A DNA stretch of 64,000 nucleotides from Oculina patagonica (lineage: Eukaryota). Shown piece after piece: positions 11,801-43,963 of the stretch. Under the pieces are notes generated by a model. The model worked only from the letters and a program-made list of their open reading frames with translations. It was not told where the DNA came from and did no database searches. The DNA is taken from positions 7,192,001 to 7,256,000 of the forward strand of contig NC_135762.1 of assembly GCF_052425735.1 (NCBI RefSeq), read 5' to 3'. Both the position numbers and the translations under genes were made by a program. Position 1 is the first letter of the stretch. Each line of letters begins with the position of its first letter.

Positions 11801-14800
11801 TTCTAACTCCATTGTTTCAGTCTGAATGTCTCAGTACTCGTCGGCGAACATCGCGCAATTGGCGAGCGCGCTCAAGTTTAGTTTTGGCGGGAAAGTTTTT
11901 CTCCTTTTACGACCGCAAAACACCAGCTAAATTTAAATTACGAGGTTCTATTTCATTGGCAAAACGTCTTTTCAATTCATCGTACAGTAACACAACTTTA
12001 CTTCAAAGTGACCGTGATATGGTGGCATATCAGGTCAGTGACTTGATATCGTAGAATATCAGGACAGTAGATCGCGCTTCTGATTGGCTACTTGCGAATT
12101 TGGGTACGGTAATACGGGTAACAAGCGCGCGCACGTAAACAAAAGGCGGCTTTTCTCTATCCGGTTGAGCTCGCGAGAGAGATAAATCGTCGTTTTCTCG
12201 AAAATGACTGAGTACGGTGACCTATCAGTTTTTTCTCGTATTTTGAGTATAGTGATCAAATTCTTTCTATAAAATGAATACAGATCAATTTCTATGTTTG
12301 AAAAATAAATTATCACCGGAAACGTGTACTTTGCCAGTACTTGCAAAGGAATTATTAAGGAATTGTGCGGCATATACAAGGTTTTCCTGCTCCTAAACGA
12401 ATGGTGATCCACCTTTTTTATTTCAAAATTCAATTTCCCCTAAGGTAATCAACTAGTAGCTAGGCAAAGTTTGGCTGAAAATCTATGTTCAGTTCTGATT
12501 TCAGGGGTAATGACCTTAAAGAGTGCATAGTCCTAAACTATAAAATTGGAAACCGGCGTGATCACTCTCCAATAATAATAATAAAAATACTGAGGCGCGT
12601 GAAGAAACGAGAAATTTTTTCTTGACAATAGGGCCTGCTAATAAACAATCGGGTTTGAGATCCTTCATACTTGCGATTAAATTTGTTTCTATTTTTTCCG
12701 GCTGAGAAAGTTTATTTACCTTGGACGTTGAGTGTCACAGAAGCCTGAGCGGTCCCCTGGTCAGTACGAATTGTACACACGTACATTCCATTATCACCGA
12801 CTGTCGCATTTTTGATATGAAGTGTTCCTTTGATGATGGAATATCTTCCTGCTGGGAGGGAACCATCTTCTTTGGACCACGACACTGTCGCGTCAACATT
12901 TCGCTCCGGAGAACACTTGAACACGGCGGACTGATCCAGGGCAACGGTCCTAACTGCCGGCGTAACGATAATCCCAGGGGCAGAAATTACATCCCCCGCT
13001 TGCCCCCTGAATGGCTGCAGGGAAGTCGGAGTAGGCAAGGTGGGTTCTCCAGGTTCACCCTTTTGGCCTTTTATCCCTGGGGGTCCACGGAGACCCGGAT
13101 ATCCAGGGGACCCCTGTGGTCCTTGTGGTCCTATCTTTCCCGGTGGTCCCTGAACACAAATCTGACTTTGGCTAGTGCAGATCTTTTGCGTTGCAGTGTA
13201 GACGGATTTGGTGATTTGTTGTTGTATTTCAGGGGCCAAAACACCATTGTCTCCTTTAGGGGATTTGGAGGACTCAACATCTCGCCGGTCTCTTTTCTGA
13301 GCTGAAGAACTGTCTGACTCGTCTTTCGAGAAGCGAATTCCTATGATAAAGGAGTAAATGGTGTTACAATGCTACTTGGAGCATCATTGATGAGATAAAC
13401 AAGTGAAATACGTTTTCTTTCACTTTACGGTTTGCTGGGGTCAATTACAGCTCGTAGCCATAATTTCTTAACAGCATTGGATAAACGCATTTTTTCTGTA
13501 TTGTTATTTAACATACCAGTGAAAATCACTCAGAAAAGCACCATCGTAAGTATTAAGACGGAATCCACTAGGAAGTCGAGTAATATTTATTAAAGTTGGA
13601 CAAAAATCAAGTACCAGAATAATTTAAATCCTATTGCGTTATTTCCTACCCTTAATAAAAGGTAAAGATGTAAGTAATTATCCGTGATAACACCAACAAC
13701 AATTTCTTATCAGAGTCTGAGAAAATGAATTTCAAAGTTCACAAGGTATAGGCAAACTCTCACGTGTAGCCATTTTGGAAATTCGTCTTAAGCGATTCAG
13801 TGGAATTTAGCGGAACTTCGAAATTTGTTTTCGATGTTTGGTGTTGTTAGAAAAGATTTCTTTTGATAAGATATTTGAAGCAGTAACAAAAAAGTTTGCA
13901 ATAAGGTGGAAATAATTCTGGTACAACAATTTCTTATCAGAGTCTGAGAAAATGATATTCAAAGTTCACAAGCTATGGGCAAAAGCTCACATCTTTTAAG
14001 CGATTCATGGGAATTCAGTGGAACTTCGAAATTAGTTTTCGATGTTTGGTGTTGTTAGAAAAGATTTCTTTCGATAAGATATTTGAAGCAGTAACACAAA
14101 AGCTTGCAATCAGGTGTAAATAGTTTTGGTACATAATTTTGTCCAATAACTACTCGAAGTCCTGGCGGATTTCCTCTTAAAATACTTCTTTCTACAATTG
14201 TTACAACAACGCTCACCAAGTTGATATAACGTGACGGTTTACCTTCAGAAAGTCGATCGGGAGAAAACAAATGTTAATCTTATTATCAAATCACTTCTAA
14301 CTTCTAGGTCCCCACTCTTAACTTGAGCTAAAGATTGTCGAAGTGTCACAGATCGATAATGAGTCTGGGATTAGATCTCGCGCGGTATTAAATTGAAATA
14401 ATTCAATTGCTTTAGTGGAATTCAAAACACCGAGGTTACAGTTTTGCAGCTATTAATAACGACAAGGATTTCTAGAAAATTCTTAATAAGTAAGTAAATA
14501 TTCTAGAAATCTTTTGCGCTGATCCAACCGATAGATTATTTCCATTTCTGTCGCTTTCTAAAGACAACACGACCCGGCAAATATTTCATGCCAACGCCCC
14601 TTCCAGATAACATCGACTGTTGAAGAGAACAGAAAACACCGAGAAACCTTTTCGTTCAGGATATTTAATTGCAAAACATGCTACCATGATCCCACAGATT
14701 GTCTTTCTAGCAACCTGAGGCCACGAAGCAGCCGAAATCGAAACGAAAGAATCAAGCTTTTGGGAAGGGAGCGTTAAGTATACTGGTAATGTTTGCCTGC

Positions 14801-23400: not shown

Positions 23401-23713
23401 ATGCTTATTGCTTAAAACTAATTACACTACCATATAAGAGCTAAAGCCGCTTGATCAGAGTTCGACTGTTACAGAGCTACGAGTTCTAAAATCTATCAAT
23501 GAACCGGTTAATTAAAAGGCGATTTTTGCCTCGTCAGTTTTTTTTTCGTTTTTTTCCCTTGCCAGGTAGCCTGTGTACAGCCGCCCCCTCCCCTCAATAA
23601 AAATCGGGAAGGAGCGTCTGTGATTTACCGTTGATAATCGTGTTCCGGAATAATTTTGCATAAATTATGAAAAACGATTTACGCTGACCAAAATTTCCGT
23701 GGCGCACATTGTT

Positions 23714-25597
23714 ATGTCTCAAATTTTCAAAATGGCGGTCGATGCGAGTAATTTACAACGTGCTTTCGAGAGGGTCTGCGACACTTTTAAAATTCCTTCG
23801 CTTTACGACGAGCAAAAGGAATGCTTAGAAGCACTTTTCAATGGAAAGGATGTCTATGCAAGTCTTCCAACTGGATACGGGAAGTCCTTAATCTTTTATG
23901 CAGCCCCAATCGTTGCCGATGAGCTGTTTTGTCGACGCGGCAGCAAAATAATTATTATCTCACCTTTGAAAACGCTTATGGAAGACCAAGTGGCATTCTT
24001 ACGATCTTTGGGCCTATCGGCAATTGCTCTTCACGATGAGCAATCAGAAGAACGACTCAAGCAAGTTGAAAAAGGAGCGTTCACGTACTTGTTCGCTTCT
24101 CCTGAAAAAATGTTAAGCGTGGAGCGATGGCGCAAGCTTCTTTCAAGCGAGCATTATCGCAAGTTTCTGGTCGCGATAACTGTGGACGAAGCCCACTGCA
24201 TAAGCCAGTGGGGTCTCCCTGGAGTAACACAGGCTAGAAAGCAAGCAGCTGTCCCTTTTAGAATTTGGTACGGGAACCTTGGAGAACTCAAGTCGTTAAC
24301 CGCAAGTGATGTCCCTTCGATAATTTTGACTGCCACTGCTTCAATGTCAACAAAAAGAGACATTTTTAGGGCTTTGAACTTAAACCAGTCCTCATGTTTT
24401 ATTATGGAACACAGTCCAGAAAGGCCCAATGTTCAATTCGTTGTGCGATATTTAGATAAAAACATGCCAGTTTCTTGTATATTCAGTTCTTTGATTGAAG
24501 AGCTGAGGTGCAAAAATGTGTCATGTGAAAGAACAATGATTTTCTGCCAAACACGCAAGCAGTGTGCTCTGGTTTATTCAGCATTTAAGGAAAGCCTCGG
24601 AAATGGTTTCTTCGTTGATAATGAGCCGGACAGTAAAAGGAGAATTGTAGAAATGTTTCATGCTGGGACCCCAGAGTCTGTGAAAAAGCATGTTCTTCAT
24701 AACATGTCTCAAGCTAATGGCCACATTCGAGTTATAGCCTGTACAGTAGCATTTGGAATGGGAGTGAACTGTAAAGAAGTACATCGTGTTATCCATTTTG
24801 GCCCTTCTAAAAACCTTGAATGCTATGTCCAAGAATGCGGAAGGTCTGGTAGAGATGGTCAGCCAAGTTCCTGCCTTTTACTCCACAATGGGCTGCTTGG
24901 TGCACATTGCAATAATGACATCAAAGATTATATTTCTAATAGTACTGACTGCAGGCGCACCTACTTATACAGTCATTTTCCAGGAAAATTTACTTCCTCT
25001 GTGTCAGGTCACCGGTGCTGTGACATGTGTGCTACAACATGTGGTTGCGGACAGGAAATGTGCAAGGAACCTGCTACTTTGAGTTTCGATGCAACTGAAG
25101 AACAAATTTTACCCTCTGAATGTGTTCGTTCAGTTGAAGAAAAGGACAAGGTGGAACTCAAAAAGGAACTTTTTGAATACATGAAACACTTGTTAGTTCA
25201 AAACACTTCAGGTGCTGTGGCATCTGTAAACATGATGCACGAATTTACAGCACATCACATAAAGCAAGTGCTTGATAACTGTGACAGAATTAATACATTG
25301 CAGCATGTTGAACAATGTGTTGAAGTTTGGAGGAGAGAACATAGCCGGGCAATTTTACGCGTTATTCACCAGGTCTTTGGTGATTTCAATTGTGACGAGT
25401 TGGAGGCACCAGAAAATGAAGATGATGACATGGAGGAACTTGCTCAGGAATGGGCTGACATCAGAGACGACTCTGAACTATGTCAGCTATTAAGTGAAAG
25501 TGACTATTTTGACGTAGACGTTCAGATGGAAGAGATTGATCAGTCAGGTAATGAAGAAGTAAACATGAGTAGCATGATCGGCAATATTTTTAAATAA
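23714..25597 (+). CDS. Transposon-encoded RecQ-like SF2 DNA helicase (intronless)
   Basis: Motifs LPTGYGKS (I), ISPLKTLMEDQ (Ia), VDEAH (II), TATA (III), IFC (IV), TVAFGMGVN (V), QECGRSGRDG (VI), Zn-binding CRR...CCDMC and an acidic tail. First ATG at 23714; ATG at 23732 (aaaATGGCG) is an alternative start. Confidence 0.93.
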   Translation: MSQIFKMAVDASNLQRAFERVCDTFKIPSLYDEQKECLEALFNGKDVYASLPTGYGKSLIFYAAPIVADELFCRRGSKIIIISPLKTLMEDQVAFLRSLGLSAIALHDEQSEERLKQVEKGAFTYLFASPEKMLSVERWRKLLSSEHYRKFLVAITVDEAHCISQWGLPGVTQARKQAAVPFRIWYGNLGELKSLTASDVPSIILTATASMSTKRDIFRALNLNQSSCFIMEHSPERPNVQFVVRYLDKNMPVSCIFSSLIEELRCKNVSCERTMIFCQTRKQCALVYSAFKESLGNGFFVDNEPDSKRRIVEMFHAGTPESVKKHVLHNMSQANGHIRVIACTVAFGMGVNCKEVHRVIHFGPSKNLECYVQECGRSGRDGQPSSCLLLHNGLLGAHCNNDIKDYISNSTDCRRTYLYSHFPGKFTSSVSGHRCCDMCATTCGCGQEMCKEPATLSFDATEEQILPSECVRSVEEKDKVELKKELFEYMKHLLVQNTSGAVASVNMMHEFTAHHIKQVLDNCDRINTLQHVEQCVEVWRREHSRAILRVIHQVFGDFNCDELEAPENEDDDMEELAQEWADIRDDSELCQLLSESDYFDVDVQMEEIDQSGNEEVNMSSMIGNIFK

Positions 25598-27302
25598 TAT
25601 GTAATATATGTAAAGCTCCTGTTGAAACATTTGAGTTCCATGCTTCTGTTTTGTCAGAAAAAAATGTACGCTGAAGCTTCATTGATTTGTAAAATAATTT
25701 CATTTAGAGAGAGTTGTAAACAAAGGAAACAAAGAAAATTGTCAAGTAGTTGTTGATCGTTGGAGATGGTTCTCTGTTGCAAGTGTAATTCAAAGCATTG
25801 AATAAGGCAATTTTGGTGACATCAGTAAAACCCTCTGTTTTGCGTAATGGCATGTTGTCCTTATAGTTTGTAATCATGTAGTGCATGGAAAATTGTAAGG
25901 AGTGTTTGGAAAAATTAAGAAAATAGTTAACAGTATTTATTACATGTATTCACCAGTGGTGGAGGTGAACAGTGGTTGATATTTACCAAGCCACAAAGTG
26001 GCGAGGTAAATATCCACCACTTTCACCGAAACCGAGGTGAATAATATATAAACAATAGCCCCGATTTGGGGTGAAAATATGCAAGGATATTTGTTGCCGG
26101 ACATTATCTGTTCCAAGAAATGAACAGTTTTCCGAAAGCAAAGCTCAAGTAAAACTGTGAGCATTGAGGAAAGGATAATGTCCAAGGACAATATCCGTAC
26201 ATAATTTTGAAGCCAAATGGAGGCTATTGTGTTCATTATCCATCAAATATTTTTATGCAAGGCCGCATTGCTCAAAGCTTTGAAACATCAAAGTAATTCT
26301 GTCAGCATTCAAAATATTGTTAGTCTACTAAAAATGTTTAGTTCTATTAATTTTAACAATTTACTTGAAATCAAATCTTAACATTTGAACATAAATTGCA
26401 AAGTTCGTAAACTGGGGAATATCACTTGGGGAATATGATCTGATATTCCCCAATTTTGGCTGCATCATGTGACATGTTACAGTAAGCCTAATCGCAAGCG
26501 CAAAAAATATTTGATGGATTATAGAAAAGAACACAAGAAAGTGTTGGGGGAAGGAACATACAGCTCACAGCAAATCAAAAAATGGGTGATTGGCTTGAAA
26601 AATAATAGTGAAATATTGTTTAACTGAATTTATTAACAGCTTATATTACAGTGTGAATATTCCCATTTTTCTCATTTGAAATTTGCATGTAATTCCACAT
26701 TTTTCCTCCCTTCTAAGTTATTGTAACATATTTCCCACCCGAAACTAAAAATTGACAGGTGTCTTGCTAAGTTGTACTGATTCTACAGATCACCATGTGA
26801 CAACCTATTGTTTGTTTCAATGTTCAGTCTTTGCAAAACACAATATTGCCTTGAGGTGTGCAAAATTGAAAACCTTGAAAATTTCTCTAACTTGGCCAGA
26901 CTGTAGGTTACTGGAACTAATTGCAATTCAATGTCAATGGCTTAAGTTAACTTTTCTTTTATGTGAACAGGAACAAAAATGGTTTGCCAGCTACCACAAT
27001 GGGTGCATACAAGGCATGACTTCAAAATAAACCACAAATGAAACAAAATAAAAATCTGATTGAAAATGAATTAATTCGAAAAAAAATTCAGAATATCAAC
27101 TTTCTGGCCAAGTTTTCCATGGCATCACAGATTACTTAATATACATGTACATTTGAATGAAGGGGTTCATTGAATAAGGCCCTAAAGTGACTCCTGATCT
27201 TATATGAAATTCTCCCTTTGATTTACAAACATTACATAGGGCGGATAGGAAGGATCATAAGTCACCTGGAGGTCCATTCCAGGCATCCCTCATTATTGTA
27301 TT

Positions 27303-30300
27303 CTAACGTGCTTTTCTTTGTCTAGAAATGTTTCTCTTGTGCTTGTTTATCCACCTGAACATGTCTTGAAGGTCAAAGTTTGACAGGAGGGTAGACTTGG
27401 TATCACCAAAGTGGGCATAGGTACGCCCTGGTGTCCAACAGAAAGCCTTCTGGGTGATCAGCTCTGAGACAACCTTGCGTAAATCAGACTCCACTGAAAG
27501 TTCATAGTGGTGTCCAGAACGACGGATGACACAACACTCTTGATCAAAGTTGTCGAGTAACACCTTAGTGAAATCAATTGCATGGCAGTAGCGATCCATA
27601 GCCTTGTGGTTTGTTGCATTAGGTCCCAGTTTTTTCCTGACTTCTTTCAGTAATCGATTGAAAAACTCCAGGAGCAAATCAAGGGGAATGTTTTTCCCCA
27701 GCCCTGACTTTAACTGTGCAGTTCTGTTCCAAATAAGTTCATGAGAACTTTTGGGTGAGAGCAATGCATGTACCTGAAAAATCATCCCTAGGGCTTCAAG
27801 AGCATACTTTGTACTCCCAGGGTCCATTCTCAAGTAAGGCAATTGAAACTTCCAGCATCTGAAGATACGTTTCCCATCACCCTCTTTTATGGCATCAAAA
27901 AAGTTCAAAATCAGCATGCCATATTCTAGGAAAGAGCACTGATAATTGAACATGTCATCCTTCTCAGGAACTTTGTCTGAAGGTGCCATGTCACTTGAGA
28001 AAAGTAGCCCTTGGGAATCTGAAGATGGGATCTGCTGATTATGGGTAGATTCATGATCACTCATTCGCTTTCCCCTGCATGCAAAGGTCTTACCACAACC
28101 TGGAAAAAAACAAATGTATCTGCCATCATCAGTTTGACATCTGGCCTCTTCTTCCTCAACGGCCTCTGCAGCTAAAAGGCTGTTGAAAATTTTCTCAACA
28201 TTTTCTCTTTGAATGACATAGCCATCTACAATGCGTGTGGCAATTTTGCGGACATATTCCTTTCTCTCCATATTGCTGGCTTCAGGGAGGTCTGGGCGAA
28301 AATATTCACCTTTGGGGCTGTCTGAAATGCCATCCATCCCCAGCTCATGTACCGCGGCTGCTATTAACCTTGCTTTAACTTCAAGGTCAAAAAATTTTCT
28401 ACAGGGATTAACAGCTGCATCCACGTCGGCTCTAACATTTCTTCTGTTGATTAAATTTCTATCACTGTAGAGGGTACACTTGTCCCCAGATGATTTGGTG
28501 TCATAGAAGTTCTTGAAAGCAACCTAAAAACAGATTTGTGGTGACATTTAACTTACGTTTTGTACAAAATTGGTGTGCAAATGGAAATGCCACTGTATGC
28601 AATTTGAAGACATATTAGGAAACAGATATTTACCATATTATTTGCTTAATTAATACTGACTTGCATTGAAATTAGCATGGTGGCAGTGACTTGTAATTAT
28701 AAAAAAGGGGTCATAATAAAAAAGTGATAGTCTATGTCTATCCCCAGATGACTAAAAAAATACACAATAAAAACATACTTTTAAGCTTTAGTTTTATGCT
28801 CATTTGACCAAAAAGAAAAGAAGAAAAATAAATTTTACACAATTTTTTGTGTGGTGTCATAAAACATTGACTGGCTTTTTGTAGGTTAAGGCTTTGCCTT
28901 CAAAGGGTATCTCTAAGGCTGAAGGTGTTAAAGAGGGTTGGTATTTTACAAGATTGAGTATAGAAAAGATTACCAACTGGGGGTATATGAAAGGGGTACC
29001 ATTGGCAATTGAAGGTATCCAAAAGGGCTACCTTTTCTATCAAAAGTAGTTTGACATAAAGGAGAATGAGGACCTCGGAGCAGAACATCCCTGTTTTAAA
29101 AATTTTGGAGGTACCTAATCTAAAGGGGAGAATTCTTGTGATAGCCACATTCAGATAATTATTTCTAATGATTGATCTACATTGTTGGGAGAATTTGTTA
29201 AAGGTTCAAAACAATTTCACTTTGGTGACCATTTTATTAATTCTCCTAACCTCTTGAATTAGTATTTATATTGTGAGGAGAATTAAGTGAGTATAAATCC
29301 ATATTCACCAAGCTGCTAACATTTACATTGTGCAAAATACCTTTAAAAACTTATTTCCCGAGTGCCAATCAGCAATTTCCAGGTGAATTCCTTCCAGTCG
29401 TTCCTCAGGGGTAAAGCCATTTGCTAGCTCGAACAGTGCATTCACGCCTCGTTCTACTGAGAGCTGATCAGCAACCAAACCTTGTGAAGAATACACTCTT
29501 TCATCTCCATCACCATAGTAGGGTACATATTGATGCAGTTCTGTGAGTACTTGCTGAATGCCATCTGCATCATTTTCATTGTGATACAGCATTCCCAAAA
29601 AATTCTACAAAGAGAAAACACATGATATGCATAAAAGAAAAAAGAGGATTGATGTATATTCCAAGTCTGTCTTTGAGGATAAACAACCAAGAACAAAATT
29701 AAAAGTAACCTCTATATGGCATATCATCTACATTAAATGCCAACCAGCCATGCTGTAGATTTAATTTTTATAATTGAATTTTTTGACAAATTTACAATGT
29801 ATTACCATTTCTGATTTATCAGCCATTTCCTTGCTATACTGGTGTGGAATGTGTTTGCAGACCACAGGCTTGAGGAATGACAAACAGGGTATTTCCACGA
29901 CTGCCCTCTCAGTAAGGGTTATGTAATTTTCCCTCTGAAGTTGGTGCTCGTGACGACTTGGCAAGCACAGACCATTCTCCATCTGCATAAGAGCCTCTGT
30001 GGCAGGTTTGTCACTGGATAAGTGGTTTCCTGATACACGATTTTCAACGGACAGGTGGGAAACCCAGTGGACATCAACGTTTTGGTGCTCTTCGGTCATG
30101 TAGTGAACTTGCTGCTTGAAGTCGAAGTTGTCGAACACCAACTTTCTTCCTTTATCAGCAGATATAATTACAGCTTGCTCAGGCTGCGGCTCTTCTACTG
30201 CAGGATGGGAAATGGTGGCAGATGGTGCATTAGTTGGTGCTCTGTGTTTTTTCTCAAGCCGTGCTGTCTCCTCCTTGACCTTCTTTTGGACGGAAGCAGC

Positions 30301-31965
30301 ATGATCTTTTCCAAATTCGTCCAGCTTTTTGTAGTAGTAGGAATGGCCTGTAGTGACTCTGAGGGAACCCAGTCGACAAAGAGAGCCCTGTAATAAATAA
30401 AGCCTGTGTTGATGCATGCTAAAGTCAAAGGCTACATTGTTTTGACCAATGCACCATTAATTTGCAATACCAGATCATTCAGCCAGTACTACACTGTAGC
30501 TACAATTTTTTTTATTAACACCATAGTCTGCATAGAAAAATTTAAATTAGGTTAAAATTTATCATTTTGGTAACTAATGCTCTGAAAGGAAAATGGCATT
30601 TCTTATAAATTAAGCTGTAAAAAGTATGTGTTGTGGTTCAAATCTGTCTTTGGTTTAAAATGCTTCTAACCAGTTTTATTTTTATTTACCCTTGTTTTGG
30701 ATTACGATAATAAATTCAATTTTAGCTGGTTTAAAAAATTTTAAACCAAAGATTAATAATTTTCAAACCACATATATCATACCTATGACAATGCCTTGAG
30801 GTGGGATGCAATGTATTCAGATGCAAGAAAGCAACAACTACTGTATAGTGACATGCCAAATTATTCACTTAGCAAATAAAATTTAATATGGTCCTCAGTG
30901 CTTTACGTGTGGACTAATGGAGTACGTAAAAACATTTGATAAAAATTGTTAAATACTCACAATTATCCCTGAATGATACAAAGTGATAGTGTTGATCAGC
31001 TGCATTGCATTCATACATGGGGACCTGTTCTTCAGCAAGACTGCCGCGGACATGCACACTGATGGCTGCCAGAATCGATCATCTCTTTTGCTTTTTCTGA
31101 CGCTGGCCGTCCATAGCACGGCACTGAACAAGGGAGCTTTCGATTCAAGTTCGGTGTTGAACTTCTTGAGTGAGAAGGACTGAAGATCTTTTTTGCTTGG
31201 TGATCGTAGGCAACTAGGATTTTTTAACGAGCACATAGCAGTACACTCACGATCAACTTCCTCCAAATACAACTGTTGCACATGTTTTCTCAGAATGGGA
31301 TTTTTCCACACTGCCCTTGCGATTTGCTTGTACGTACCGCGGCAAAGCATCTTGCCGAGCGACTCCAAACCTTCGTGTAAGTTGTTGACTTTCGCATTTG
31401 GTCGGCTTGGCCACTTGATTGAGACTTGAACGACTGTCTTCTTTTCCTCGACGTCGACTTCGCGGGCAGGAATCGGCGAAACAGGTCCAGCGAAAGCAGC
31501 AATGTCAACAGGACGACTTTTCTCCTTACAAGGTGTCGAGGTAAGTATACTTGACAACTGATCCGCCGATGTTTTACTTGTGAATGCGCTGCTATCGTCT
31601 AATGTCACAGATGCGCTCGAATCCTCCAACGCAACACGCTTTGCAGCTTGTTCTTGGAAAGAGCTTGACTGGTTAGAGGACTGCGATGTGATAACATTGA
31701 CTGGTACTGGATTAACAGAAGACTTCTTTGCGAGGAAGATTTTTTGAATAGTGTTATTTACCTCTCGAAGGTTCGTCGAGAGCGCCCTTCGTTTCTTCAA
31801 CACCGACAGACAATTTCTACAAATGTACGGCGAATTAATTTCCACTTTATACTCTAACGATAGCAATTCCTCTCGCACGTTAAAAGGATTGCCCCTTCGT
31901 CCATCAACAAGATTTTTATCCGTATTTTTCACGATACCTAAACCACAAAGCACACACGAACTCAT
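27303..31965 (-). CDS. Academ-type transposase, 4 exons, ~1023 aa
   Basis: Exons 31965-30961 (1005 nt), 30387-29806 (582), 29604-29341 (264) and 28523-27303 (1221); all phase-0 GT-AG joins, no stops. N-terminal CxxC...CxxC; candidate catalytic motifs LVFDNFDF, VADQLS, EIADWH, NIPLDLLLEFFN; C2H2 finger CFFPGC...HESTH. Confidence 0.85.
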
Positions 31966-32365
31966 GACAAATCTCACATTTTGGTTGTTGGTGTGAAAAA
32001 AAGTGATAGACTATACAGAGAAGGCCCATTATGTAAACCCCGCGAAAATTATAACCAATCGAAACGCGTTCTTTCGATGATGTAATGATCCACTGGTGAT
32101 AGCCAATCAGATCATTTTCCAAACATTCCAGAAAAAGTCACGTGGTCCGGAACACGATTATCAACGGTAAATCACAGACGCTCCTTCCCGATTTTTATTG
32201 AGGGGAGGGGGCGGCTGTACACAGGCTATTGCCAGGCAAAAAGTCACTTATCGCGCCCATTAAAAAGATCTGCGATTTTTAAGTCTACAAACCACTAACA
32301 GTCAATTTAATCCTAGTTCTTAATTTCAAAGTCCTTGTTTGGAGCGGGGCTACCAAATGAAAGCA

Positions 32366-35300
32366 TCACGGAGATTTTGGTTTGAGTTTCATCTCACTTC
32401 CCTTGAGACCCCAGTACCAGTAATAATAAGAACTGTCTCCATAGTTACCATTCAGATGAGAACCAGAGGTACAGCTGTTAAACCACCAAGCTCCTCGGTT
32501 ACTTACAGCACAGTTGCCACCGTTCTTGTCACTATCTCTATTCTTGGTAGAGAAAGGCATGGTGTTATAATAGTAAAGTCGATCCTTTGCTGAGCCAGAA
32601 TAGAAATAAAACAAACAGCGTGTAGTTAGTTGCCTCGTTAGTAATCGTAAAATTACTGTATTTAGCGTATTTATTTCCATTGGTTGTTGTGTTGATTTCC
32701 ACTCGCAGCTGACTCGGAATCTCAGTCAGTTGATGAATCTTTTCGTTTCCAAGCCAAAACTCTCCTCTGACGTCACCAAACCCGTTCTTATACTCGTCCC
32801 AGTCCCTGTAGAATCCAACAAATCCATTGAAGCGTTTGTGAAAGACAGTCCATCCACCACCATCCGTCTTCATGTCACAGTACACTTCAAAACTGGTTTT
32901 GATTGTTGGGTTCACTGTGTTCACCTTCGCGTTTTGGCTCGACAAATAAATTTTCCGTAGAAGAGATGTATGATGTCTTGCCGAAGTTCCCCAAGCGAAT
33001 CGCGAATGAGCACCCGCATATTCTGCAAAAATTGGACGGACCGCTTGATTTCGTCTTTCTGCCTCTTTTTGCAGGTTTTTTGGGGGTTGAAGAAGTCGTC
33101 TCAGACGCAAACTCAACATCGAAATAAAAACTCACGAGTTGTTTTGTAAACTGACACTTGAACAAGCACTTAACCGCTCAAATTTTATTGGTCCGATTTA
33201 ATTGAAAGGTCAAGAGGCGGAGTTGTAAATTACAAGGCGATGACAAGGGGAGGAGTCTAATACTTCCACTTTTATTCAAAGATGTCTACAGCCTCTCTAT
33301 TTTTCCTTCGCTCGCTCCCCCCCCCCCTCCCCCCGCGCGCTCGCGCTTCGCGCTCGCTTCGTTTGCTTTTTTCCGTTGAAAACTCGAGAGGCTGTGGACA
33401 GTCTAAAAGATATCAAGAAATGGAGAGAAAGACTCCATATTTCCTTGTTAGCACTAGTAAAATTACTAATTTTAAAAACACGAAACAACTTTTTAAGAAA
33501 GACTTTTTAGCAGAGAAAGACTCGCTGTACAGAGGCAGAAAGACAGAGATAGAATAAAACCTGAACGAACAAGATGAAAATGACACAAATTAAATGTCAA
33601 TCAGTTTGAAGTTTGATAATTATATCATACTTAGCAACCAATTCTTCGTTAGGAGACACACATGCGTGAGTGATCAGCATTGCTTACCAGTTTTTACAAT
33701 AAGCTGCACCTCAGTCTCCACATGAACGAACTCGCTCCGTGCAGAGCAGATATAGGTTCCACTGTCTTTAGCCGTCAAACTGTTAATCTTCAGTTGTCCG
33801 CCTTTCACTTGAGAGCGTTTCTCTGGTATGTTTCCTTTACATCGTGCCCACGTGATGCTGGGTACTGGGTGTCCGTCTGCGGAACAGTTCAGTGTGACTG
33901 ACTGTCCGTGATAAAGTTCTATCTTGTCTGGCGGCTTGACTGTAAACTGAGGCACCACGTTGACTATCAGAGCTGTCATAGCGTGCGATGTACCCATGGC
34001 GTTCGTTGCAGTACAGATGTATGTTCCAGCGTCTTTCTTGTCCGTCTTTGTTATGGTCAGGGTCTGACCTTGGACGGAGGCTCTGCTACCGGGGAGCTGA
34101 TCAAAGAGTTTGGTCCAAGATACCACCGGAGGGGGATACCCGATGACCCGGCACTTAGGGAGCTTGACATCTTTTCCGCTCTCGGCGTATATCGGTCCAG
34201 CGGGAAGGAAGATCAGAGGACGAGCTGGGCACGAGAAAGATTCGATTTCAATTTGTGTATAAAACAATATATAGAAGCAGATAATACTCATAATATTCAA
34301 GTAAATATCCAGTAATTTTTCCATATTGGACAGTACGTGGATAAGTGCCCAATATGATTGACGGTTGATAGAACTACTGTCCAATTCAGAAGACCAGAGT
34401 TCAAAACATGCCTTCAACATTTGGCCAAGCCTAACTTGCTGCAGTTTTCTTGTGTAATTATTTCAAATTTAATAGTTAATATACCTATGCTCAATTTGAA
34501 GCCCACGTGATCATTTTCCAATTATTTAAATTTGTTATTGACAGTAAGCTACAATAAGACCTGCTGCTGAACGATCGGGTTCGAGGTCTTGTATCCTTGC
34601 AATTATTTCGTTTTTTACTTTTTTCTACTGAGATATTGAAACCTCAGTTTATTTACCTTGGACGTTGAGCGTCACAGAAGCCTGAGCGGTCTCCTTGTCA
34701 GAACAAACTGTACACACGTACATTCCCTTATCACCGACTGTCACATTCTTGATACGAAGTGTTCCATTGATGATGGAATATCTTCCGGCGGGGAGGGAAC
34801 CATCTTCTTTGGACCACAAAACTGTCGCGTCAACATTTCGCTCCGGAGAACACTTAAATACGGCGGACTGATCCAGGGCAACGGTCCTAACTGCCGGCGT
34901 CACCACAATCTCAGGGGCGGAAATAACATCCCCCGCCTGCCCCTGAATGGCTGCAAGGAAGTCGGAGTCAGTGAGGTGGGATCTCTAGGATCATCTTTTT
35001 GGCCCTTTATCCCGGGGGGTCCGAGAGGGCCCCGTGGTCCTCGTGGTCCAATCTTTCCCGGTGGCCCCTGTGGTCCTTGTGGTCCCGGAGGTCCCTGCAT
35101 ACAAATCTGACTTTTGCTAGTGCAGATCTTTTGCGTTGCTGCGTGGACGGATTTTGTGATTTGTTCTTGTATTTCTGGAGCTAAAACGCCATTGTCTCCT
35201 TTGGACGATTCAGCATCTCGCGAGTTCCGTTTTTGAGCTGAAGAACTGGTTATGTTAACATAAGCAACGGGAATGTCTAAAAAAAAAGGAGTAAATACTG

Positions 35301-36743
35301 TTATGCTATCTCGATCGTCGATTTAAAATTTGTGAAATACAAGAATGTTTGTTCTTGTTGGGGATAAATGACGCCTTTCAACTTCTTTTGTATTATAAGA
35401 AGATAACAACATAAAAATCGAGATGGCCTAAGTTTTTTATTTTTATATTTCATACTTATGGAGGGTAGGCCTGCGCTCAGAAAGACAGAACCATAAAACA
35501 CTTTACTCAAAATAATGAAAGGCCTCGGGCGGAAATTGCCTTTTGCTCGGACACCCTAAGTGAGACCAAAAAATCCGCCCTAAGTGAGACGACTAGCATA
35601 TCCACCTCTTGCATATTGGAGCCATTCACCGGAAATTTTTGATGCCCACTTATCGCGAGGTTTTCCATCTTTGCTTGTTTACACGAAAATTCCAATGGAA
35701 CAAGGTTGAAGTGTTTTTTTGAGTCTCGACCGAAAAATCAAATAGACAAAAAGCCGATCGTCTAAACCATTATTTAAGATCCTCCATCCACGATCCTAAC
35801 TGCTTCAAAGCAAACAGAGTCTAGAATCCAGCCTCGCCAAAATTATCAATCGATAAGCAATCCACTGTATTTTCAACATCTGCATATCTGATTATCGTAG
35901 AATTCCGCAATCCGTGATCATTTTAAGGTGAAATTCGTTAATCCGCGAGCCTACTCACCCCCTCCCCCCCCCCCCCCCCCTGCTCTCAATAATGTTTAAA
36001 TTCTTTATGGCTACTTTTGAGGCTTAGTTTTCGCAACGTATTTTCCCTAAATCGTGCATTTAGTAACCAAGATTGTCACTATTATATTATGTAAGGTAAG
36101 GACATCGACCGCGAGCTGCAGATAAATGTACGTGTCAGCACAGGCAGACCACACTATGTGTTCGTGGTTAATAATCGTTCACATACGATTAACAAAAGAA
36201 ATATGTTGAAATCTATGAGTGTTATGAATAAAGCCCTGAAAATTACATTTCTTAATGAATCTCGTTCTATATATTTCAATAAAGGTGAATTAATGTTAAT
36301 TGACTCGCGTGTGGTGTTTTTTCGCGTTCCTGGGCCGTATTAAGCGTTTTTGTTTTATGTTACGTTCGGCCAAAGGCCGGTAAGAGGAGAAAAGGAGATG
36401 CACTCGACTAGATTAATTCCTGGTTGTCTTTTTTAGCCGACTGAATATCTCGTTTATGTTTAAAAGGCGAATCAAAAAAGTCGTTAATAATGCGGAACAA
36501 GCCATCCAACTTACCTTCATTCAAGGATTTGAAAACTGGAACTGTTGTTGTCTTTTGCTGGTTTTCTTCCAGAGCCAGAATTCTCTCATTGAGAGCTTTT
36601 AACTCATATGCTAGTCTCATAAAACCAACGCTGTAGAAAACCACGCTGATTAAAGTCAAAAAACAACAAAAAGCCACGAGAAGGCGAGAAGATCCGCTAC
36701 TGCCAGCACTCGTCATTGTGTATGGTACAGTAGTGTCTAACAT
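32366..36743 (-). pseudogene. CniFL-like copy C, pseudogene
   Basis: Exons 36743-36515, 35276-34657 (620 nt; 1-nt deletion in a C-run at ~34940), 34224-33688 (intact Ig2+Ig3) and FReD remnant 32920-32366. The FReD acceptor and first codons are replaced by a TE fragment, and there is a +1 frameshift at ~32605-32612. Confidence 0.88.
32921..33405 (-). mobile_element. One-ended Academ-like fragment replacing the 5' end of the copy C FReD exon
   Basis: Ends in GAGAGGCTGTGGACAGTCTA (TAG terminus on the minus strand), with an internal inverted partial copy at 33284-33297. Carries a coding remnant (TPKKPAKRGRK...FCRICGCSF...STENLF) fused directly to FReD sequence at 32920. Confidence 0.6.
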
Positions 36744-38818: not shown

Positions 38819-41800
38819 TCAGGGAGATTTTGGTTTCAGTTTCATCTCACTTTCCTTGAGGTCCCAGTTCCACCGATAATAACTTCCTGCATATTGAGCG
38901 TTCAGAATATGACTGGTGCCACAGCTGCTATACCACCAAGCTCCGTAGGCTTTAGCACAGTCACTGCCGGTCGACTTGTCATTATCCCGATCCTTGGTAG
39001 AGAAAGGCATGCCGTTTACATACTGCTTAAGATAATCCGGTGCTGAGCCAGAATAGAAACCAACAAACAGCGTGTAGTTAGATGCCTCGTTAGTAACTGT
39101 GAAGTTGCCATATTTTGCATACCTTTGGAGACCTGATGTTGTGTTGATTTCCACTCGCAGCTGGCTCGGAATCTCAGTCAGTTGATGAATCTTTTCGTTT
39201 CCAAGCCAATACTCTCCTCTGACGTCACCAAACCCGTTTTTATACTCGTCCCAGCCCCTGTAGAATCCAACGAACCCATTGAAGCGTTTGTGAAAGACAG
39301 TCCATCCACCACCGTCCGTCTTCATGTCACAGTACACTTCAAAACTGGTTTTGTTTGTTGGGTTGACTGTGTACACTCCACTTTCCTTGAAGCCAGCAGA
39401 AAACAGCTCGGCGCAGTCTCGGGCTAAAAAAATAGAATGAATAAATGAATGACTGAAATGCAGAATTTTTGGCTAATACTCCAGCTGTCTTGTCCAATAA
39501 CTATAAGTACTGGCAACAAAGTTATCAAAATGTAGAAGTGGCTAACATAAATATAGAGTACAGGCGATCTAGTCAACCTATGTCTTAGTAACTTGAAAAA
39601 AATGCACAAAAATATTGAACAAACTGGACTATTCACAGCCCTCGAGCTCCATTTTTTTGTTCTGCATTTTTCTTCGACCGTTGAACGCAGGAAAAAAAAT
39701 ACGAGAGAACAGGACGCAAGGGAACAGTTTACTAGAAACTGACAGAAATAAAAGAGTTTTAATCTAAGGGATCGAGGAGAACGAGGTAATTTCAACATTT
39801 AAAGAATAAAAGAACGCATATATACTTATGATTTGCATATAGGAGATAACGCATGTGTACAGTGCTTACCAGTTTTAACAATCAGTTGCACCTCAGTCTC
39901 CACATGAACGAACTCGCTCCGTGCAGAGCAAATATAGGTTCCACTGTCTTTAGCCGTCAAACTGTTTATCTTCAGTTGTCCGCCTTCCACTTGAGAGCGT
40001 TCCTCTGGTATGTTTCCTTTGCATCGTGTCCACGTGATGCTGGGTAATGGGTGTCCGTCTGCGGAACAGTTCAATGTGACTGTCTGTCCATGGTAAAGTT
40101 CTATCTTGTCTGGCGGCTTGACTGTAAACTGAGGCACCACGTTGACTATCAGAGCTGTCATGGCGTGTGATGTACCCATGGCGTTGGTAGCAGTGCAGAT
40201 GTACGTTCCTGCGTCTTTCTTGTCTGTCTTTGTTATAGTCAAGGTCTGACCTTGAACGGTGGCTCTTCCACTAGGAAGTTGATCGAAGAGTTTGGTCCAA
40301 GATACCACCGGAGGGGGATATCCGATGACCCGGCACTTAGGGAGCTTGACATCTTTCCCGCTCTCGGCGTATATCGGTCCGTTAGGAAGGGAGATCAGAG
40401 GGCGAGCTGACACGAGAAAGTTATTATTTTAATTTTGTGTATAAAACCAGAAGCATATATATATGCTTCTGATAAAACAATATGAAGTATAGCAGATAAT
40501 GATCATAATTACATTGCTATACTTAAATAAAATGCAAGGAAATTTTTAAATTTTTTTATGTGCAATTATTTCCAAATTAAGGTCATTGCTTAGAATTGCA
40601 TTGCGCATCCTTTTTGCGCAGGATTTTACGGGTAACAAGCGCGCGCACGTAAACAAAATGGCGGCTTTTCTCTATCCGGTTGAGCTCGCGAGAGAGATAA
40701 ATCGTTGTTTTCTCGAAAATGACTGAGTACGGTGACCTATCAGTTTTTTCTCGTATTTTGAGTATAGTGATCTATAAAATGAATACAGATCAATTTTTAT
40801 GATTGAAAAATAAATTATTACCGGAAACGTGTACTTTGCCAGTCCTCGCAAGACTCTCGCAAGGGAATTATTAAGGAATTGTGCGGCATATACAAGGTCT
40901 TCCTGCTCCTAAACGAATGGCGATCCACCTTTTTTATTTCAAAATTCAATTTCCCTTAAGGTAATCAACTAGTATGCAAAGTTTGGCTGAAAATCTATGT
41001 TCAGTTCTATTTCGGGGGAATGACCTTAAAGAGTACATAGTCCTATACTAAATTGTAAGCCCGCGTGATCACTCTTCAATAATAAAAAAGAAAAAAAAAT
41101 GAGACGCGTGGAGACACGAGAAATTTGTTCTTGACAATAGGGCCTGCTGATAAACGCCAGATCGGGCTTGAGATCTTTCATACTTGCGATTAAATTTGTT
41201 TCTACTTTTTTCCGGCTGAGAAAGTTGAAACTTAAGTTTATACCTTGGACGTTGAGCGTCACAGAAGCCTGAGCTGTCCCCTGGTCAGTACGAATTGTAC
41301 ACACGTACATTCCATTATCACCGACTGTCGCATTCTTGACATGAAGCGTTCCTTTGATGATGGAATATCTTCCGGCGGGGAGGGAACCATCTTCTTTGGA
41401 CCACGTTACTGTCGCGTCAACATTTTTCTCTGGCGAACACTTGAACACTGCGGACTGATCCAGGGCAACGGTCCGAACTGCCGGCGTAACTTTAATCCCA
41501 GGGGCAGAGATAACATCCCCCGCCTGCCCCCTGAATGGCTGCAGGGACGTAGGAGTCGGTAAGGTGGGTTCTCCAGGTTCACCCTTTTGGCCTTTTATCC
41601 CTGGGGGTCCACGGAGACCCGGATATCCAGGGGATCCCTGTGGTCCTTGTGGTCCTATCTTTCCCGGAGGTCCCTGCACGCAAATCTGACTTTGGCTAGT
41701 GCAGATCTTTTGCGTTGCAGTGTAGACGGATTTGGTGATTTGTTGTTGAATCTCAGGAGCCAGAACGCCATTGTCTCCTTTGGGGGACTTGGAGGACTCA

Positions 41801-43963
41801 ACATCTCGTGGGCTTCTTTTCAGAGCTGAAGATCTGACTGTCTCGTCTTTCGAGGAGAGGATTTCTTTGAAAAAGCAGTAAAAAGTGTTACAATGATAAG
41901 TCTTACGTCCTGGACAGACAAATGTGAAATGCGCCATTTTTCACTGTTTGCTTTGGTATTAAAGGATCCCACAGCTTGCAGCCATTATTTAACGATATTG
42001 GAGAAACGTAAACTTCTTTTTTGTTATTTTTGTTATTTACGGGTTCGAATCCCGTCGAAAAGTTGATATCAGTTTTGCTAGGCTTCTTTTCCCCAATTGT
42101 TTAAATTGGTGGGATCACATTGAGGATCGTGTTATTGCTTAACGCTTACTGAGGTAACATCATGTGACGGTTGCCTTCAGAAGTTGTGGAGAAATAAATG
42201 TAAAGCATATAATCGAATTACTTATAACTACCGGGCGCCCGTTATAAACTCGAGCTCAAAACATTCTGTTATAGACCTTAGTGGGATGTTTTCCAATTAA
42301 AGGGCTTATCTAATTTTATTTTTAAGAGTAAAAACTGTTAAGATGTCAAAGATCGATAACTAAGGTTGGATTAGATGTCGGTAATTAAAATAATTAAATT
42401 GCTTTAGTGGAATTCAAAACACCCAGCCTAGGGTTACAATTTTGCAGCTATTAATAACGACTAGGATTTCTAGAAACTTCCCAAAATCTTCTAGTAATCT
42501 TCAGTGTGCTGATCAAACCGATAGACTAATTTTATTTCTCTTGCTTTCTGAAGGCAACCCAATCCAGCAAACATTACTCGTTAACGCCCTTTCCAGCTAG
42601 CATAGACTTTTAAAGAAAACATGTGAAAGATAACAGCGGGGCCCCTTTTCGTTGCGAGATAAACTTCCCTTCTGCCATAGATTGTCTTTCTTAAAAAGAC
42701 AATCAACAAAGAATCAAGCTTTGGGAATAGGGCGTTCACAGGCAATGTTTCTTGGCCGGGATTGCTCTCTCAACAGAAATAGAGATATTTCTCGCTAACG
42801 CCCCTTCCTGACAACATCGATTGCTGAAGAGAGCAGAAAACAGAATGGTACCTTTCCGTTCAGGATATTTAAATTCCAAAATATGCTTCCATATAATCCC
42901 ACAGATTGTTTTTCTAGCAACCTGAGGCCACGAAGCAAAAACGAAACAAAAGAATGAAGCTTTTGGGAAGGTGGGCGTCTACTGGTAATATTTTGGCCGG
43001 GGTTGCTTTCTCAAAAGAAATCATGCATTAGTTGCATTGGCTGAACGATTAAACCTGAAAATATACTTTACTTATTTAAGATATATTTTTCATCAATTTT
43101 GAAAGAAATACAGGAAATTGCTATAGCCAGCTTGTGATTATTTCGGGCCTGGCTTTGAGTCGAAAACTCGTTGAACACATGTACAGAAACGCCTTTGTCA
43201 CTTTTTACATTAAATTAATTATGGTAAAAAAAAAAATTAAGAGTTCTTAACCAATTCTTGGGCCTGGGCTACTATCGTAGGATGTTTCGATACATTTTGA
43301 CTTTTCTTAGTCTTCAAATTCTCATTAAAAATGGTAAAATAGAGTTCACTGATTTGTAAACTGTCGCTCTAGTAGCTTCCAGTGTGCTTGCTCGGTACGT
43401 GTGGATACATCCGATGCATTTATTTAACAGTTATTTTGCAAAATAACAATGTAAAAGTTTCAAAATTGTGGGTTTATGAATTAAAGAATGGGCTAGAACT
43501 ACCACACCAAATTTTCGACCTTGTCTTTGTTGCAACTTAGATGTCGTCTCTAGCTATTCGAGGCTATCTATTTGGCATGTACGTATACCATACTGAAAAC
43601 CGAGCTCTTTTGGCATATTGCAAGAAAAGCGATCATTCTTATTGGCCTTTTTTAAAAACTGCGAGACGCACATTAAGAGCGGAAAAGTTTACATAGCTTT
43701 CGAGGAAATAATAATGTAAGTTCCTCTCCATAATGAATTTAACAAAAAGACAGACTTAATGACTCACCGTTTGTTGCCGGAACAGGCGGAATGTGCGTTG
43801 TCGCTAACTCTTTTTCTCTTTGTTCGAGAGCCTCAAGTCTTTCCTTGTAAGCTCGTAGCTCCAACTCAAGCCTCACATAACCAACACAGTACAAAAAAAC
43901 GCTTGTAATCAAAACACAACAACAAACCACAAGAAGGCGGGAAGATCCACCAGCGCTCGTCAT
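38819..43963 (-). CDS. CniFL-like type II TM-collagen-3xIg-FReD protein, copy D (intact, ~652 aa)
   Basis: Exons 43963-43768 (196 nt), 41864-41244 (621 nt; AAG acceptor; KRSPR), 40406-39870 (537 nt) and 39423-38819 (605 nt; FReD). Total 1959 nt, continuous frame. Confidence 0.92.
40448..40471. mobile_element. 24-bp palindromic micro-insertion with 7-bp TSD
   Basis: ATAAAAC|CAGAAGCATATATATATGCTTCTG|ATAAAAC; a single ATAAAAC at the paralogous sites in copies B (~11258) and C (~34259). Confidence 0.85.

Follow-up and report, generated by a model that had tools for sequence, protein, structure and literature searches.

Positions 23567-32228 of a 64-kb stretch of Oculina patagonica DNA (assembly GCF_052425735.1, contig NC_135762.1, positions 7,192,001 to 7,256,000 of the forward strand; zero Ns) hold a RecQ-like helicase gene and a transposase gene in pieces, running towards each other between inverted repeats. 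The question raised by this locus is whether these 8,662 bp are a transposon, whether it still moves, and to which superfamily it belongs. The analysed stretch is called the window below, and positions refer to it unless another sequence is named. The region is a very recently mobile, autonomous two-gene cut-and-paste DNA transposon, and judging from its sequence it is probably active at present. It represents a lineage combining a DUF6589 transposase with a RecQ-like helicase, which can be equated with AcademH with good confidence. The element is judged to be a new member of a known, little-studied kind, with a target-site duplication (TSD) one base shorter than published.

The element is bounded by terminal inverted repeats (TIRs) of 83 nt that are 100% complementary to each other and have the termini TAG..CTA (Table 1). 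The terminal 32-nt sequence of the TIR occurs twice in the window, both times at an element end, with a chance expectation of 0; zero further copies or miniature inverted-repeat elements with the coral TIRs were found in the 64 kb. The TSD, TTGCCAGG, is exactly 8 bp long, as extension by one base fails on either side. The helicase and transposase genes are convergent; counted inwards from opposite TIRs, the distance to the start is 65 nt for the helicase and about 180 nt for the transposase.

A second full-length copy of 8,662 bp, reached via a protein cluster, lies inverted on chromosome CM126638.1 (L001 11610-20271). It differs from the window copy by 5 substitutions in 8,662 bases and zero indels (99.94% identity), and it has perfect TIRs and its own 8-bp TSD, TTCCACTT. 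Four of the five differences are non-synonymous; copy 2 has P65S in the helicase and Q484H and L572Y in the transposase, and both of its genes are stop-free. The two copies are alike precisely up to the TIR ends, beyond which their flanks are unrelated. Because the similarity is confined to the TIR-bounded element, the two copies arose by transposition; segmental duplication was rejected, as the copy boundaries coincide with the TIR ends. A copy that is nearly identical and yet has its own TSD means, moreover, that the transposition was very recent.

The transposase is coded by four minus-strand frames, which after splicing give 335+194+88+406 = 1,023 amino acids (aa). The three splice junctions are present together in a single 3,833-nt RNA contig (run X5, depth 29), which extends 362 nt past position 27000 on the 3' side of the gene. 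RefSeq protein XP_078371566.1 of O. patagonica is identical at every residue to the spliced 1,023-aa model, and the spliced protein is collinear with other cnidarian homologues across the three junctions. Segments found by tblastn in DNA of Nematostella, Porites and Paramuricea break at about residues 335, 529 and 617, the same residues as the coral junctions. The transposase gene gives rise to a spliced transcript coding for 1,023 aa.

The second gene encodes in one uninterrupted frame a helicase of superfamily 2 (SF2), and its exact protein sequence was found in NCBI (P0151). Pfam matches are DEAD (1.4e-18), Helicase_C (7.8e-18) and, weakly, RecQ_Zn_bind; zero RQC or HRDC domain was found in the Pfam scan. 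WRN, E. coli RecQ, RECQ1, BLM and RECQ5 are the closest PDB sequences, with E-values from 1e-37 to 1e-29. Motif I reads GYGKS (residues 54-58, with Walker A K57) and motif II reads DEAH (158-161); motifs III, V and VI (QECGRSGRDG) are present too, as are the clustered cysteines of the zinc subdomain. The C-terminal tail is strongly acidic.

A first-pass annotation of this DNA had described 83-bp TIRs without mismatch, an exact 8-bp TSD, two convergent genes starting near opposite TIRs, an uninterrupted RecQ-like helicase with its core motifs, and a transposase of about 1023 aa joined from four open reading frames (ORFs) via three phase-0 introns. This description was borne out by the complementarity of the TIRs, the TSD that cannot be extended, the gene starts, the 627-aa helicase frame with motifs I, II, III, V and VI, and, for the transposase, the RefSeq identity and the X5 contig, which holds all three junctions that the annotation proposed to look for in RNA. 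Its view of the element as young and possibly active agrees with 5 differences in 8,662 bp, a different TSD at copy 2, open genes and spliced mRNA.

In Pfam, the spliced transposase has DUF6589 as its sole match (5.8e-33, residues 523-956; 4e-23 when exon 4 is used alone), and zero hAT, P, MULE, KDZ, PIF, piggyBac or other transposase matches were found even at E<=1. A structure was predicted in AlphaFold2 (AF2) from a 47-sequence alignment, with a mean local confidence (pLDDT) of 82.7 and a predicted template modelling score (pTM) of 0.72. When the model was ranked by VIA-align, Hermes and the P element (both Z 9.2) came first, followed by ISCth4 and the PFV integrase core (both 7.9), RAG1 (7.5) and then Prp8 RNase H-like domains; Foldseek E-values for the whole 1,023-aa model are weak (0.02-0.3), so the Z-scores are those of VIA-align. 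According to the model, the transposase belongs to the RNase H-like DDE enzymes in which a large insertion separates the second D from the E, with D421, D575 and E903 as the candidate triad. Conservation in the alignment is 33/36 for D421, 34/36 for D575, 37/37 for H610 and 44/44 for E903, and more invariant acidic residues lie inside the helical insertion. The C2H2 finger was the sole match in a PDB sequence profile search with the transposase, and exon 4, when searched by features in ESM-Atlas, gave C2H2-finger noise only. A bacterial cluster with Pfam UPF0236 (24% of members) was recognised as a structural neighbour of the catalytic region, with TM 0.60 (normalised on the hit) over 282 aligned residues, and could hint at a prokaryotic relative of the transposase family.

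An exhaustive HMMER search with exon 4 gave 2,873 relatives, and DUF6589 was present in every full-length relative scanned. Named coral relatives are from Montipora foliosa, Porites and Desmophyllum; the Montipora protein (P0161) is 85% identical to the transposase over 71% of its length. Relatives are also known from the anemones Exaiptasia and Nematostella, the octocorals Dendronephthya and Paramuricea, the jellyfish Rhopilema, the hydrozoan Clytia and several Branchiostoma species (amphioxus). Structural and Atlas searches traced DUF6589 relatives to Cnidaria, Mucoromycota and Mollusca, with PHD fingers in some of the molluscan ones.

In Nematostella, Porites evermanni and Branchiostoma lanceolatum, a DUF6589 gene is faced by a convergent helicase gene homologous to the coral one (30-44% identity); the first-pass annotation had named co-occurrence of the helicase elsewhere as a point to check, and these loci support it. 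Two B. lanceolatum copies (L007 8568-19637 and L008 8602-19678) are 11.1 kb long each, 99.2% alike, and have the same two-gene layout. They start and end with TAGCCTGG, of which the first seven bases, TAGCCTG, match the coral element, and they are flanked by the 9-bp TSDs CGTAGAAAT and GCTACCCAG. A miniature element of 167 bp (L007 23366-23532) shares these ends and is flanked by an exact 9-bp TSD, so the TSD is 9 bp in 3/3 amphioxus insertions, and this family looks recently mobile too. In P. evermanni, a 516-bp element (L005 7821-8336) ends in TAGCCT..AGGCTA, and its 9-bp TSD is degenerate (7/9 matching). The right end adjoining the Porites helicase gene (L005 20229-20249) reads TAGCCTGCGGTGCAGCC; the matching left end was not found in L005, and this copy looks truncated or rearranged. 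One Porites end shares the terminal TAGCCTG of the coral element. Searches for element ends at the Nematostella (L004) and Porites (L005) loci found no clean TIR/TSD pairs, and at the Paramuricea locus (L006) no helicase was found within reach.

The assignment to AcademH was made from published descriptions and features of the relatives rather than from reference Academ sequences, and is in that sense indirect. RecQ helicase has been reported for Academ elements (PMC3627910), which is the partner found here inside both Oculina copies. In a passage of PMC10045372 citing Kojima 2020, TSDs are given as 9-10 bp for AcademH and 3-4 bp for AcademX, and AcademX is said there to carry an XPG nuclease instead of the helicase. 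The published range of AcademH, as given in PMC10799480, covers animals, Basidiomycota, Ascomycota and Mucoromycota, and the animal and fungal relatives of the coral transposase fit it. DUF6589 as sole Pfam match, with no model of another superfamily, the perfect 83-bp TIRs, the predicted RNase H-like DDE domain, and the amphioxus relatives with TAGCCTG ends and the published 9-bp TSD agree with the assignment as well. Protein family, helicase partner and termini therefore tie the coral element to a lineage that behaves as published AcademH. Kojima reportedly also described, in 2020, a PHD-finger sublineage of AcademH in animals, and PHD-bearing relatives of the coral transposase exist as well. 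Full-text literature searches for DUF6589 or PF20231 and for Academ with XPG gave no useful report, and the supplements of PMC10799480 make no mention of DUF6589 or Academ.

The AcademH label of the first-pass annotation is thus supported, indirectly, with respect to the helicase, the TIRs, the RNase H fold and the 9-bp TSD of relatives, but not with respect to the coral TSD, which at 8 bp falls outside 9-10 bp. It had given 9-10 bp for AcademH and called 8 bp atypical, which agrees with PMC10045372 and with 8 bp in 2/2 copies. Its expectation of an RNase H fold is matched by the AF2 model and its top neighbours (Hermes, P element, ISCth4, PFV integrase core and RAG1), and grouping with hAT, which it had named as contrary evidence, did not appear in Pfam at E<=1.

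RNA data extend the picture beyond the two genomic copies. The X5 contig agrees with copy 2 at 29941 but with the window copy at 29476-29477. Over the TIR (32146-32228), contigs are 4-8 times as deep as in the interior, and at least four different sequences follow position 32228 across two RNA assemblies. The varied flanks and the raised depth mean that the sampled animals contain additional copies or derivatives with the same ends, and they suggest other insertions, possibly miniature derivatives, transcribed inside host transcripts. Sequencing runs X5 and X10-X19, labelled as four organisms, contain 30-98% of the 31-mers of the element. Either conservation of the family among corals is very strong, or it has passed from one coral to another.

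Several observations count against an active AcademH element. Present activity is deduced from intactness and from the identity of the copies. Splice support from RNA comes from one assembled contig of one run, and the contigs of run X1 are unspliced and cover the introns, possibly through DNA carry-over or unspliced RNA. The evidence that equates DUF6589 with the Academ transposase is indirect. In 2/2 Oculina copies, a sample of two for the coral, the TSD has 8 bp instead of 9-10 bp. XPG-fused relatives of AcademX type were found neither in profile nor in structural Atlas searches, the reach of which is limited by a word prefilter. Taken with other evidence, these points leave room for three other explanations. 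That the gene pair is no transposon but a host locus doubled by segmental duplication or by an assembly artefact would explain why RefSeq annotates both genes as ordinary 'uncharacterized protein' loci, but it has next to no chance given similarity that stops at the TIR ends, separate 8-bp direct repeats, unrelated flanks and the same layout with TIRs and TSDs in amphioxus. An intact element that has lost its mobility, by silencing or a few amino-acid changes, with the two copies as the last products of a stopped family, is somewhat unlikely; in its favour, only two full-length copies encode the proteins of the 90% cluster, the copy differences are mostly non-synonymous (4/5), and two polyA RNA runs of organism A gave 4-6 reads only. 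Against a stopped family speak the 99.94% identity of the copies, the perfect TIRs, the intact catalytic and helicase motifs and the spliced mRNA at depth 29 in X5, and also the mixture of alleles of both genomic copies in the X5 contig, which suggests more copies or alleles.

The class could also be mistaken for a young transposon that is itself real. The DUF6589 transposase would then lie outside Academ, in a separate or undescribed DDE lineage resembling hAT, P or Transib, which makes 8-bp TSDs and gained a RecQ-like helicase independently. Some Kolobok lineages carry RecQ helicases as well (PMC9587614), and the indirect nature of the Academ assignment, together with the failure to find XPG-fused relatives in the profile and Atlas searches, would leave space for such a lineage. 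It is favoured further by the 8-bp TSD of 2/2 copies, as in hAT and P, and by Hermes and P-element transposase as top structural matches, both with Z 9.2. Nevertheless it is improbable, since no hAT, P, MULE, KDZ or other transposase family matches at E<=1, the termini TAGCC do not follow the YARNG pattern of hAT elements, and the TSD is not the TTAA of Kolobok elements. Kolobok ends are RR..YY (PMC9587614), the animal-plus-fungal range fits the AcademH range given in PMC10799480, and the amphioxus kin combine the same TAGCCTG ends and helicase with the 9-bp TSD published for AcademH.

If the element is an active AcademH transposon, its transposase would recognise the TAGCCTG termini and the 83-bp TIRs through the N-terminal ZAD-like module and the C2H2 finger. 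D421, D575 and E903 would catalyse cleavage of the ends and then strand transfer at target positions staggered by 8 bp, and repair of the stagger would leave the 8-bp duplication. More speculatively, the helicase could assist transposition as a cofactor, unwinding or remodelling a DNA intermediate either at the ends of the transposon or at the donor gap; the idea arises because the helicase was kept with the transposase from cnidarians to amphioxus, and because AcademX is reported, in the passage of PMC10045372 mentioned, with an XPG nuclease in its place. It is tentatively proposed that the coral family is a currently active AcademH sublineage with strand-transfer sites 8 bp apart instead of 9-10, shared nearly unchanged among several coral taxa. 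The sharing is proposed because of near-identical sequence in runs of four organisms and the 85%-identical Montipora protein, and may point to horizontal transfer.

The value of the element is as an experimental entry point more than as a surprise. We are not aware of any biochemical study of an Academ transposase, nor of an explanation for the role of the AcademH helicase or the AcademX XPG nuclease. The element offers a full natural parts list, with precisely defined ends, a coding sequence whose splicing is verified, an intact helicase and candidate catalytic residues, and the amphioxus relative with its 9-bp TSD is a comparison partner, so that helicase function and the determinant of TSD length become testable. 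If the proposed active 8-bp sublineage is real, this would be the first Academ element open to reconstitution, and would allow a direct test of the need for a RecQ helicase in DDE transposition. For coral genomics, the element is a probably active mutagen that has already produced chimeric gene models in GenBank.

The stop (about 32366) of an immunoglobulin (Ig) and fibrinogen-C gene is followed, some 140 bp downstream, by the element. That gene has the same orientation as the transposase gene, and GenBank model KAL9972070.1 (1,488 aa) wrongly joins the two genes. The Ig/fibrinogen-C paralogue beside the element has an apparent frame change near 32641-32655 relative to its neighbours. For copy 2, GenBank model KAL9977866.1 has an extra upstream exon with a THAP domain (7.7e-07) located outside the TIR (L001 10001-11609); the THAP domain in the GenBank model P0156 was rejected as a part of the element, as it lies beyond the TIR. 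KAL9977866.1 is a chimeric model, which perhaps takes in another transposon relic.

Table 1. Coordinates of the element, its genes, the predicted transposase domains and the neighbouring gene family in the window (UTR, untranslated region)
Feature	Position	Strand	Description
Left TSD	23559..23566	.	TTGCCAGG; read directly, matches 32229-32236
Left TIR	23567..23649	+	83 bp; starts with TAGCCTGTG
RecQ-like SF2 helicase gene	23714..25597	+	single exon, 627 aa + stop (ATG 23714, stop 25595-25597); Pfam, PDB matches, motifs
Intergenic spacer of the convergent genes	25598..27302	.	contains transposase 3' UTR; without long ORF
Transposase exon 4	27303..28523	-	406 aa (aa 618-1023) + stop 27303-27305; helical insertion, C2H2 finger (28041-28112), candidate catalytic E903 (27666-27668)
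Intron 3	28524..29340	-	817 nt, GT..AG, phase 0; absent from X5 RNA contig
Transposase exon 3	29341..29604	-	88 aa (aa 530-617); candidate catalytic D575 (29467-29469), invariant H610
Intron 2	29605..29805	-	201 nt, GT..AG, phase 0; absent from X5 RNA contig
Transposase exon 2	29806..30387	-	194 aa (aa 336-529); first RNase H-like core strands, candidate catalytic D421 (30130-30132)
Intron 1	30388..30960	-	573 nt, GT..AG, phase 0; absent from X5 RNA contig
Transposase exon 1	30961..31965	-	335 aa (aa 1-335); ATG 31965; ZAD-like module, disordered linker, helical domain
Transposase 5' UTR	31966..32061	-	at least 96 nt; spliced X5 contig starts at 32061
Right TIR	32146..32228	-	83 bp; ends with CACAGGCTA
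Right TSD	32229..32236	.	TTGCCAGG
ZAD-like zinc module	aa 2-77 (31735-31962)	-	model resembles Grauzone ZAD 1pzw, Z 7.2
Disordered linker	aa 81-175	-	pLDDT <50
Helical domain	aa 198-384	-	AF2 model
RNase H-like core	aa 416-623	-	beta1-3/alpha/beta4/alpha/beta5 pattern, AF2 model
Helical insertion	aa ~626-880	-	includes C2H2 finger C755, C760, H774, H778 (conserved)
Helix with E903	aa 898-921	-	AF2 model
Tandem Ig + fibrinogen-C gene family	26-2813, 5874-7460, 12715-13311, 32366-36620, 38822-41832	-	

Among known systems, hAT (Hermes) and P elements resemble the coral element in the predicted RNase H-like DDE core split by an all-helical insertion (328 aa from D575 to E903), in the 8-bp TSD and in being its best structural matches. 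Sequence identity to them is only about 10%, however, the termini are different, no THAP or BED domain lies within the coral element, and those elements carry no RecQ helicase; the Z-score of 9.2 reflects only the shared core and insertion-domain architecture. Membership in hAT was rejected, as the TSD length fits but the dimerisation domain (PF05699) and any other hAT match are missing at E<=1 and the termini do not correspond. For the P element the 8-bp TSD fits as well, but the 1,023-aa protein has no Pfam match to THAP or to the Tnp_P_element catalytic or GTP-binding domains, and this membership was rejected too. Zisupton/KDZ was likewise put aside, with the 8-bp TSD alone fitting and no KDZ (PF18758) match at E<=1.

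RecQ helicases are otherwise known in DNA transposons from Kolobok lineages, whose ends and architecture differ (PMC9587614). In KolobokH, reported only from fungi, the helicase is fused downstream of the transposase, and Kolobok-1_CCri has a RecQ-type helicase on the complementary strand (PMC9587614). Both share with the coral element that a DDE transposon carries such a helicase, but the latter has TAG..CTA ends, an 8-bp TSD and the helicase as a separate convergent gene. Kolobok membership was rejected because the coral element has a TSD of 8 bp, termini of the form TA..TA and an unfused helicase.

Cellular RecQ proteins (WRN, RECQ1, BLM and E. coli RecQ) align with the core and the zinc-binding subdomain of the coral helicase at about 1e-37, whereas the coral protein has its distinct acidic tail and RQC/HRDC were undetected in it. 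Its similarity to helicases carried by transposons in other animals (tblastn E-values from 1e-43 to 1e-112) is far greater than that to any of the solved cellular RecQ proteins. With AcademX the element presumably shares the transposase superfamily, but it differs in having a helicase and no XPG domain and in its much longer TSD. AcademH is likewise a two-gene DNA transposon with TIRs; here the 8-bp TSD of the coral family (2/2 copies) is the difference, and the amphioxus relatives make TSDs of 9 bp.

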